Sequence record: OR455461.1
Direction: 5' to 3' (one strand)
Length of the DNA: 64,000 nt
Shown: positions 31,402 through 32,956 of the stretch, piece by piece
Layout of the letters: each line of letters begins with the position of its first letter
Numbering within the stretch: the first letter of the stretch is position 1
Notes under the pieces: generated by a model
The model's database searches: none
What the model saw: only the letters and a program-made list of their open reading frames with translations
What the model was told of the DNA's origin: nothing
Position numbers and translations under genes: made by a program

Positions 31402-32956
31402 TTAATAAATATAATCTTCGATGTCTATTTCATTTTGTTTAATTGTCATATCATGGAAAGACTTCATAGAGCTTGTTACAATTGCTTGAGCTACCTGATT
31501 GACTAATAAACCAATATTTTCTATACCTAATTTGTAAGGGAGTTCTCCTGCACATTTACTACAGATATCTTCACTTGCACAATACATAGGACTTCTGAAG
31601 TTCAATACTTTCCCAATATGCTCATCTACATTTGAAGTAGTTAACAGTGTTAATTGACCTTTTCTTCCTGAATTATCTTCAAAATATCTATAAAGTAAAA
31701 GATTCGCATTATCTTTAGTTAAAGTTAATTTTAATGTATGTTTTGTTCTACAATCAGAACCTTGTTTATCTAATACAGTTGTTTGGAAAGCAGACATAAG
31801 TTTTTTAGCTTGATCATTTTATTATCTATATTTTATTATAGATTAGACTATATCTTATGAATTTAATCATTTCTATATTTAGTCGTTGAACAACTTAATA
31901 AAGTTGATGCTAGTTAGTTTTTAACATTCTAGCAATTAATAGAATTTATTGTGAGCATCTAATTTACCCACCTTCTTGAGTCATTTATGTTAATCTATAT
32001 TAATTTAATATAGATCAGACTATATCAAAAACTCTTTATGAGTTTAATTATATTTAGTCGTTGAACAATCATTCTGATTGATGCTGATTAAGTTTATCTC
32101 TTCTCAGCAATTAATAATTTTTCTATTATTACATTACTATAATAAAGGGCATTCATATACCTAAAGCACGTCCAGCTGAACCAGCAGTCATAATGTCTCC
32201 AAACATATATAGTTCTTCTGGATCAATTCCATCAGCTAAAGAACTCTTAGCAATACGTATTTTACTAGGATCAGCGAAGTTTTTATTTGCTCCACGTATT
32301 AATGCAGTTAACTTGAAGTTATTTCCAAAACTACCTCTTGATCCACTATCATAAATATCAAGGTCTGCTAAACCTTCTAATTCTTCTTTACTTAACTTAA
32401 TTAATTCTTTTTCAATAGCACTAATAGCATTCAATTCTTCACCAGGAGTATTTAATGCTTTACCATATTTCTCTAGTAATTCTTCTTTCTTTTGTTTAAC
32501 TTTATCAGGAGCAACCATCATTGTAGTTGTCAAACTAGAATTAATAAATCCTGCTATAGAGAAACCAAGCCATTGAAGTTTATCAATATACATATTCATA
32601 TCTTTAGTTGTAATAACATCATTAAGTAATAAACTAGATAACTCAGATTGTAGATTTCCTACACCTGATCCTCCCATATCTTTATTCATATATCCTATAA
32701 TAGGTCCTATTTTATTGTCTAATATAAATTTATTAAATATATATCTTCCAACTGTTGTTCTTTCATCTTTACTATTATAAACTAAATCTTTTTTAAGTTT
32801 AAATCTATCGCTAGGATTAAACATTGGTTGTGTATTTTGTCTAAATGCAAATAATTCTTTAAGTTTATCAAGAGTAATATCTTCTTTTTTTATACTTAAT
32901 AAAGTTGATACTTCTTTCTCAGATAAATCTTTTTTATCATAAGTCATATTAACCAA
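31402..32956 (-). CDS. rpoC: Multisubunit RNAP beta' fragment (bridge-helix region), probably virion RNAP; spliced, 3 exons, about 408 aa
   Basis: Exons 32956-32159, 31981-31966 (16 nt), 31814-31402. Joining gives RALG-TQEGG-YQAKKLMSAFQ, equivalent to the beta' [14 protein letters not shown] motif; SGSRGS and CxxC also present; late promoter at 33001-32990. Confidence 0.85.
31815..31965 (-). mobile_element. Group I intron, ORF-less, 151 nt
   Basis: P1 exon GUGGGU / IGS GCUCAC with U.G; P4 UGCUAG/CUAGCA; R UUCAACGACUA; S GAUAUAGUC; ends AAAAUG. Confidence 0.9.
31982..32158 (-). mobile_element. Group I intron, ORF-less, 177 nt
   Basis: 5' exon ends GGU, IGS GCC; P2 with GUAA tetraloop; P4 UGCUGA/UCAGCA; R and S motifs; ends AUAAAUG. 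Confidence 0.9.

Follow-up and report, generated by a model that had tools for sequence, protein, structure and literature searches.

A predicted 16-nucleotide micro-exon between two compact group I introns in a virion RNA polymerase gene of a Staphylococcus jumbo phage

In a 64,000-nucleotide (nt) stretch of sequence record OR455461.1, hereafter the window, two inserts that lie 16 nt apart break up the coding sequence for the "mid" fragment of the virion RNA polymerase beta-prime subunit. Our analysis makes it highly probable that these are two independent, tandem group I introns, drawn from one compact family whose members carry no open reading frame (ORF), and that the 16 nt between them are true coding sequence. 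The window belongs to a PBS1/AR9-like Staphylococcus jumbo phage and is 99.8-100% identical to phage AH12 (blastn). The records of AH12, Machias and LY01 are of phage isolates with S. aureus as the named host, and the gene takes its name from the records of Machias, PB50 and Madawaska. The anatomy of the locus is as follows.

32159-32956, minus strand: exon 1 of beta-prime mid, 266 codons, ending in GRALG (TTAGGT) and colinear with the phage S6 protein BDE75639.1 from residue 1
31982-32158, minus strand: intron 1 (bp1), 177 nt, ORF-less, with a P2 hairpin, subfamily A; it starts with AUAUGAAUGCC and ends in AAAUG
32148-32155, minus strand: internal guide sequence of intron 1, read from the sequence, with GCC at 32150-32148 (P1) and UGAAU at 32155-32151 (P10)
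31966-31981, minus strand: micro-exon ACTCAAGAAGGTGGGT, 16 nt, encoding TQEGG and the first base of Tyr
31815-31965, minus strand: intron 2 (bp2), 151 nt, ORF-less, without P2, subfamily B; it starts with AAAUUAGAUGCUCAC and ends in AAAAUG
31951-31959, minus strand: internal guide sequence of intron 2, with GCUCAC at 31956-31951 (P1) and GAU at 31959-31957 (P10)
31402-31814, minus strand: exon 3 of beta-prime mid, opening with ATCAAGCTAAAAAACTT (ATCAAGC), of which AT completes the Tyr codon, followed by QAKKLMSAFQ... to the stop

Exon 1 closes with the letters GCTTTAGGT at 32159 (GGA CGT GCT TTA GGT). When the three exons were joined by a script, they formed 1227 nt, or 408 codons, with zero internal stops, and the product aligned without a gap to the 408-amino-acid protein of S6, with 346 of 408 residues identical. 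The predicted peptide spanning the junctions of the spliced subunit is ALGTQEGGYQAK. If the 16 nt are omitted, the frame shifts and a stop is reached within ~14 codons. The ORF listing of the locus contains two fragments only, 32153-32956 and 31402-31797. An original prediction, made from the letters of this stretch, had defined the two inserts, and on checking all of its insert coordinates and lengths were exact; its splice points were kept, following the group I rule by which a U precedes the intron and a G is its last base. Its statements that skipping the micro-exon breaks the frame and that ORF callers miss it were likewise borne out, and even the curated join in the Machias record misses the 16 nt.

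The inserts are polymorphic among related phages. By alignment, both are absent to the base from S6 and Madawaska, while PB50 lacks intron 1 alone, again to the base, and has intron 2. AH12, Machias and LY01 have both, the LY01 copies being diverged and set in exons of ~81% identity. Each exon/insert boundary carries a 1-nt ambiguity (A/A). In S6, Madawaska and PB50 the 16 nt are contiguous coding sequence that supplies TQEGG and the first base of Tyr, as had been proposed, and the sole difference there is synonymous (GGT/GGA/GGC). The insert boundaries together with the restored frame are far beyond chance. MarsHill, SA1, DC4 and PALS_2 apparently have neither insert, as judged from match spans and from their uninterrupted proteins of 405-408 amino acids, and no intron was found at the beta-prime mid site of AR9 or PBS1 by blastn; the gene is uninterrupted in most relatives. 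Since LY01, with its S6-like exon backbone, has both introns and the closer PB50 lacks intron 1, intron presence does not track exon divergence. An apparent 1.2-kb insertion in AH12 proved to be an artefact of joining a repeated piece, as the distances to the next gene are identical.

The same comparisons bear on whether the whole 344-nt block of intron 1, micro-exon and intron 2 could leave as a single intron. Such a reading is what the two-piece join annotated for the Machias coding sequence (CDS) amounts to, and exon skipping by group I introns has been reported in phages, for instance as the dominant TerL product of SIOphi (PMC11878797). However, a direct join of exon 1 to exon 3 loses the 16 nt and runs out of frame into a stop. 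The Machias product reads GRALG-IND-QAKKL, with residues drawn from intron-end bases, whereas all uninterrupted relatives have TQEGGY. PB50, in which intron 2 stands alone and the 16 nt are fused to exon 1, points to two separate elements, and a complete core, a guide sequence and a terminal G are present in each half of the block. We consider excision as one intron very improbable. Nor do the two form a twintron: they are adjacent and not nested, intron-less alleles use the intervening 16 nt as coding sequence, and in PB50 intron 2 occurs without its neighbour.

Judged by sequence and predicted structure, both inserts are miniaturised group I introns; the group I identity agrees with the original prediction. 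The evidence comprises the core elements, the U at position -1, the terminal G, covariation, unconstrained folds and full-length matches to Rfam below its threshold, and it draws on four further copies of the family in the window, which are listed here with a second micro-exon.

36354-36518, plus strand: paralogue b1, 165 nt, in the neighbouring virion RNA polymerase beta gene, with P1 GCCGAU/GUCGGC and junctions set against the intron-less S6
36519-36542, plus strand: second micro-exon, 24 nt, encoding SPRIGMTG in the beta gene, contiguous in S6 and Machias
36543-36754, plus strand: paralogue b2, 212 nt, target GGT|ACTCAAG, with extra hairpins after P9
37157-37336, plus strand: paralogue b3, 180 nt, the third beta-gene intron, target GGT|ACTTATG
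62755-62908, minus strand: paralogue "pol", 154 nt, in a gene for a DNA polymerase exonuclease domain, with P1 AAUUGGGU/GCUCAAUU and a junction verified against S6

All six copies in the window are preceded by U and terminate in G (omega-G), with junctions fixed by the intron-less S6 alleles, and all six can form the P1 U.G wobble with a matching guide sequence; both LY01 orthologues likewise terminate in G. The inserts contain a P element (AAUUGCUGAGAAG / AAUUGCUAGAAUG) and a Q element (AAUCAGCAUC / AACUAGCAUC), and both have the R element GUUCAACGACUAAAU and the S element GAUAUAGUCU. The predicted guanosine-binding helix P7 has the R/S consensus and its bulged nucleotide. The architecture is sparse, with no ORF, P2.1, P5abc or P7.1/7.2, with P5 and P8 stems of 3-4 base pairs (bp), and with ~21-24% GC.

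Unconstrained minimum free energy (MFE) folding of intron 2 yielded P1 (GUGGGUA/UGCUCAC), P4-P5, P6, P7 (GACUA/UAGUC), P8 and P9 (z = -3.3), and that of intron 1 yielded P1 (GGUAU/AUGCC), P2, P4-P5, P6, P7, P8 and P9 (z = -4.5). In the fold of a 368-nt precursor the two introns formed separate domains (z = -5.6). P3 is not visible in these folds because it forms a pseudoknot with P7. Its register is fixed by the six bases before UAAUUGC, which pair with the six bases after ACGACUAAAU, and it covaries across the copies (AAUUAU/AUAAUU, UUCUAU/AUAGAA, UAAUAU/AUAUUA, AAUCUU/AAGAUU and CUAUU/AAUAG). An intron's P3 pairs with its own partner at 5.9 of 6 positions, versus 3.3 of 6 with the partners of other introns.

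MAFFT alignments of the paralogues scrambled the variable hairpins, and an anchor-based dissection and covariance-model alignment were used instead. The helix-by-helix table contains compensatory changes in P3, P4, P5, P6, P8 and P9; the LY01 orthologues differ from the window by compensatory replacements in P3, P4, P5, P6 and P9, and RNAalifold recovered P4, P6 and P7. The covariance model was built from three near-identical intron 2 orthologues and covers helices P3, P4, P5, P6, P8 and P9. Applied to the 64 kb, it retrieved exactly six copies (E from 2e-24 to 1e-3) and no other match. P7, which lies outside the model, is invariant (A(C)GACUA/UAGUCU) and 100% paired in 27 distinct sequences. 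In the same set, comprising 38 pairs in 7 helices, standard pairs occupy 95.3% of the cells, versus 30-43% in every slid register, double-sided changes were found in 28 of the 38 pairs (245 cells), and none of 500 shuffles matched the observed values.

Next, we consider the part that the micro-exon would play in splicing. The last six bases of the micro-exon, GUGGGU, can pair with GCUCAC at positions 10-15 of intron 2 to form a P1 with the U.G at the splice site, as the original prediction of a 6-bp downstream P1 required. This helix has 6 bp, or 7 bp if A1-U9 is counted, and the pairing is identical in PB50, Machias and LY01. At the base facing the A of the guide sequence, intron-less alleles have GGA or GGC and not GGT, in a sample that is small and confounded by phylogeny. 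The predicted P10 of intron 2 is AUC/GAU, 3 bp in the window, and reaches 6 bp (CUUGAU/AUCAAG) in LY01. At the other end of the micro-exon, ACUCA would provide the P10 partner of intron 1. The P10 and P1 sites do not overlap, and together the predicted splicing helices take up 11 of the 16 bases, in agreement with the earlier proposal that most of the micro-exon is used in this way. As P10 helices are short, chance pairing in them is hard to exclude. A longer P1 for intron 1, through UAGU in the P2 loop, was rejected, since it lies away from the splice site and lacks conservation.

Several observations weigh against the two inserts being active group I introns that share the micro-exon. The P1 of intron 1 is weak, consisting of only 3 bp with the exon (GGU/GCC, including the U.G) and two pairs with intron bases (AU/AU). 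Its P10, which had been proposed to involve the micro-exon and was found as ACUCA against UGAAU (intron positions 4-8), is a short helix with 4 of 5 pairs and a C.A mismatch. This mismatch recurs in paralogues: b2 has the same guide and target as intron 1, and b3 (ACUUAU/AUAAAU) retains the mismatch with one compensatory change relative to bp1 and b2. The pairing percentage in the 27 sequences leans somewhat upward with an alignment fitted to the covariance model, although the gap to the controls is large. Rfam family RF00028 matched both inserts end to end (intron 2, 26.9 bits, E = 5e-5; intron 1, 23.4 bits, E = 5e-4; 366-nt query with laxer filters), and both scores fall short of the gathering score, set at 50 by curation as a detection threshold and not as a structural criterion. 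No group I match was returned by an E-value scan of 2 kb against Rfam or by a gathering-threshold scan of the whole window, because the scores fall under that value. The LY01 orthologue of intron 2 is almost without P8, which is odd for an active ribozyme: at L126:1234-1387 it has 8 nt (CAUUAGAA) in the place of P8, with the remaining core intact and P10 perfect. Either P8 is dispensable in a minimal core, or this copy is impaired. Finally, both inserts are much smaller than the well-studied self-splicing group I introns and, having no stabilising domains at the periphery, may depend on a protein cofactor.

To locate the micro-exon in the protein, the uninterrupted S6 ORF was taken as a proxy for the spliced product, and window exons 1 and 3 were scanned as separate pieces. 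Pfam detected no domain in the S6 ORF, in exon 1 or in exon 3. A phmmer search of PDB chains with the S6 ORF matched bacterial beta-prime (best E = 1.7e-4) and aligned AGSAGRALGTQEGGYQAKQLMSAFQ, at the highest posterior probability, to the bacterial segment that forms the bridge helix. The TQEGG(Y) of the micro-exon corresponds to bacterial TADSG(Y), in the centre of that helix. The bridge-helix placement in the original prediction is thus sustained by the uninterrupted S6 protein, which aligns GRALGTQEGGYQAKQL to bacterial beta-prime.

This placement bears on a second alternative, namely that the inserts are not spliced and the gene is truly split, its flanking ORFs being separate polypeptides and the 16 nt no part of the subunit. 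RNA polymerase subunits of jumbo phages are naturally split into several genes (PMC7598289), and ORF callers report a 131-amino-acid ORF with an ATG in exon 3. Against this, the split would halve the bridge helix and delete TQEGG, and in the uninterrupted protein the ATG of exon 3 corresponds to a Met within the chain. Phages with and without the introns have the same 16 nt apart from a synonymous position. The inserts also bear every group I hallmark, with covariation, and elements of the same family break up the beta and DNA polymerase genes, again at conserved motifs. We consider a truly split gene, too, very improbable.

A third alternative is bypass at the protein level, either through inteins or through ribosome hopping of the T4 gene 60 kind. 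A stop two codons into insert 1 (GGT ATA TGA) loosely resembles the gene 60 take-off site. For inteins, in-frame stops are prohibitive, with TGA as the second codon of insert 1 and T+AA at the boundary between micro-exon and intron 2. For hopping, there is no matching landing codon GGU before ACU at the end of insert 1, and two hops of 177 and 151 nt are without precedent. As the evidence from RNA structure accounts for the inserts fully, bypass has a next to negligible probability.

The best explanation, two tandem introns around a coding micro-exon, can be described as a series of steps. Each intron would fold its own minimal core, made up of P1, P2 where present, P3-P9 and the P3/P7 pseudoknot, and would presumably be removed by the standard two-step transesterification initiated by guanosine. 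In the precursor, the micro-exon would act as RNA at both ends, ACUCA in the P10 of the upstream intron and GUGGGU in the P1 of the downstream one. Intron 1 would probably be spliced first, because it emerges first in transcription and the bases of its P10 site are distinct from those of the downstream P1, with independent splicing of the two introns as the other option. Both ligations would be needed to produce the bridge helix (...GRALG-TQEGG-YQAKKL...) and the reading frame. The analysis demonstrates the anatomy of the locus, the exact insertion polymorphism, the restored frame, the covariation and the bridge-helix position, whereas the occurrence of splicing, its autocatalytic nature and its order are what we infer.

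The other copies of the family place the beta-prime introns in a wider setting. The "pol" intron divides the Exo I motif as G|FPEP. With all three introns removed, the beta ORF has 1421 codons and no stop. Its 24-nt micro-exon, flanked by b1 and b2 (36354-36754), lies 4.5 kb from the 16-nt one; AH12 annotates plain ORFs there. Machias is without b1, and its four-piece beta annotation does not include the 24-nt exon. A blastn search with intron 2 matched 101 places, confined to six Staphylococcus jumbo phages (25 in LY01, 21 each in AH12 and Machias, 16 in PB50, 11 in Madawaska and 7 in MarsHill), and none in S6, PALS_2, DC4 or SA1. The copies in the window form two subfamilies. Members of subfamily A (bp1, b2 and b3) have a P2 hairpin and the guide ...AUGCC, and every one of them sits at GGU(Gly)|ACU(Thr); those of subfamily B (bp2, pol and b1) lack P2 and have P1 helices of 6-8 bp. 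The first 46 nt of bp1 (32158-32113) and b2 (36543-36588) are near-identical, and the two have a common 10-nt target, GGT|ACTCAAG. The 5' end of b3 is at 37157-37201, with the same GGU|ACU placement.

Compact relatives were also detected with the covariance model in contigs of uncultivated large phages from IMG/VR, at ~131-165 nt by the bounds of the model. Because the 5' P1/P2 parts differ there, the intron boundaries in these contigs are imprecise. Many copies are present in L122:3407-3734, L091:803-1186, L095:2049-6074, L044 and L045, with spacings of just 36-58 nt in some cases and five copies inside 4 kb in L095. Micro-exons in L122, L095, L091 and L044 were considered and rejected, as excising the model-defined intervals restored no long ORFs; only the close spacing is claimed. 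In another virion RNA polymerase beta-prime gene, that of MarsHill, two family copies lie 130 nt apart (L143:326-483 and 614-749); since the second copy contains the end of the annotated CDS, at 633, a terminal exon may have been missed in that record. No introns were found in one 50-kb chunk of the Machias genome. The Machias beta gene (L142:1861-2968) has a large intron with an annotated homing endonuclease where the window has none; because this intron lacks a counterpart in the window, intron content varies gene by gene between near relatives.

How the family multiplied is a more speculative matter. These 150-180-nt RNAs may be fully autonomous ribozymes, in which case no natural self-splicing group I intron yet characterised would be as small, and, as they have no endonuclease genes, they may have multiplied in the genomes of jumbo phages by reverse splicing into short matching sites, directed by their guide sequences. 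We put this proposal forward only tentatively and regard it as rather doubtful. The GGU|ACU site of all three subfamily A copies, the common target and 5' end of bp1 and b2, and the covariation between P10 and target are compatible with it. The site pattern of subfamily A suggests that either the guide sequence or a single endonuclease selects the target. Spread directed by the guide would leave the common 5' end and target of bp1 and b2, and so would an endonuclease that acts in trans on that recognition site. If guide-directed spread is true, micro-exons would arise where two target sites lie 16-24 nt apart, and a micro-exon serving both P10 and P1 would force the introns to be spliced in a set order and would restrict the codons of the bridge helix.

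Two ORFs downstream of beta-prime (30119-31366 and 26707-28965, both minus strand) combine DUF7487 or DUF723 with a treble-clef zinc finger and have weak matches to the nuclease family REase_MTES_1575. They are candidate free-standing endonucleases of the homing type that could mobilise ORF-less introns. The 415-amino-acid downstream ORF is missing from that place in Machias and is unannotated in AH12. Two tRNA genes (29520-29604 and 29965-30034, minus strand) lie between the beta-prime cluster and the next ORF; at the corresponding place Machias has two tRNA-Asn genes annotated as pseudogenes.

The beta-prime mid gene, an essential one, is wrongly annotated in all four intron-bearing public records that were checked. 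In AH12, PB50 and LY01 it appears as two separate ORFs, the second being a 131-amino-acid ORF that begins at an internal Met in exon 3. In Machias (QQO92551.1, 402 amino acids) the protein reads ...SAGRALG-IND-QAKKL... instead of containing -TQEGGY-. The same error probably affects other intron-rich jumbo-phage genes, and standard pipelines will not flag such introns, which Rfam misses at its curated threshold; the covariance model built here recovers the family together with its relatives in uncultivated large-phage contigs. If AT-rich cores of 150 nt do self-splice, they would set the lower bound on size for natural group I catalysis, and the locus would offer a compact system in which two ribozymes share a 16-nt substrate. 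Close relatives have none, one or two introns at one site, and with the common target motifs this makes the spread of ORF-less introns between co-infecting phages accessible to study. The value of the finding thus lies in a corrected annotation, a compact family that escapes detection, possible self-splicing at 150 nt and possible RNA-guided integration.

Among known introns, the group I intron of Azoarcus tRNA-Ile, ~205 nt long, is often cited as the smallest well-studied natural self-splicing one. The introns described here resemble it in their compact core without large peripheral domains. They differ in their predicted length of 151-180 nt (150 nt in PB50 and Machias), in residing in protein-coding genes, in being AT-rich and in their predicted P5 and P8 of 3-4 bp. 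In the staphylococcal phage Twort, orf142 reportedly contains three group I introns and undergoes exon skipping, as Landthaler and Shub are said to have described in 1999. The resemblance is in the multiple group I introns within one gene of a staphylococcal phage, in Twort with alternative joining of exons. The Twort introns are larger ribozymes of the IA2 type with longer exons between them and do not form a compact multi-copy family.

The nearest work on these phages is that of Korn et al. (bioRxiv 10.1101/2020.12.14.422802), who reported that genes for virion and non-virion RNA polymerase subunits, DNA polymerase and other proteins are disrupted by introns in MarsHill, Madawaska and Machias, as in AR9, that the number and position of the introns vary between phages, and who predicted exon boundaries by protein alignment only. 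The clade and the genes are the same as ours, and the Machias mid gene is there given one intron with a wrong junction; that study does not describe the 16-nt exon, the presence of two introns in the gene, how the RNAs fold or how the introns are related. The micro-exon arrangement itself has a phage precedent, because in the ribonucleotide reductase gene of phiNIT1 (Bastillevirinae) two group I introns enclose a small exon that came to light only through cDNA reads (PMC11878797). Both cases combine two adjacent group I introns, a small internal exon and the risk that the first 5' site is joined to the second 3' site. Phage, gene and introns differ. Our predicted exon has 16 nt, a length not divisible by three, with 11 bases in predicted splicing helices; the size of the phiNIT1 exon is not in the main text of PMC11878797. 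In organellar genes rich in introns of groups I and II, mini-exons range down to 3 nt and 1 nt (PMC8971849). Like the micro-exon described here, they are very short, flanked by introns of autocatalytic type and missed by alignment-based annotation, whereas they are mitochondrial, usually lie between large ORF-bearing introns, and are found neither in phages nor in RNA polymerase genes. In conclusion, the beta-prime mid locus is not a new kind of element; it is a new instance of a known phenomenon, in a miniaturised type of intron.

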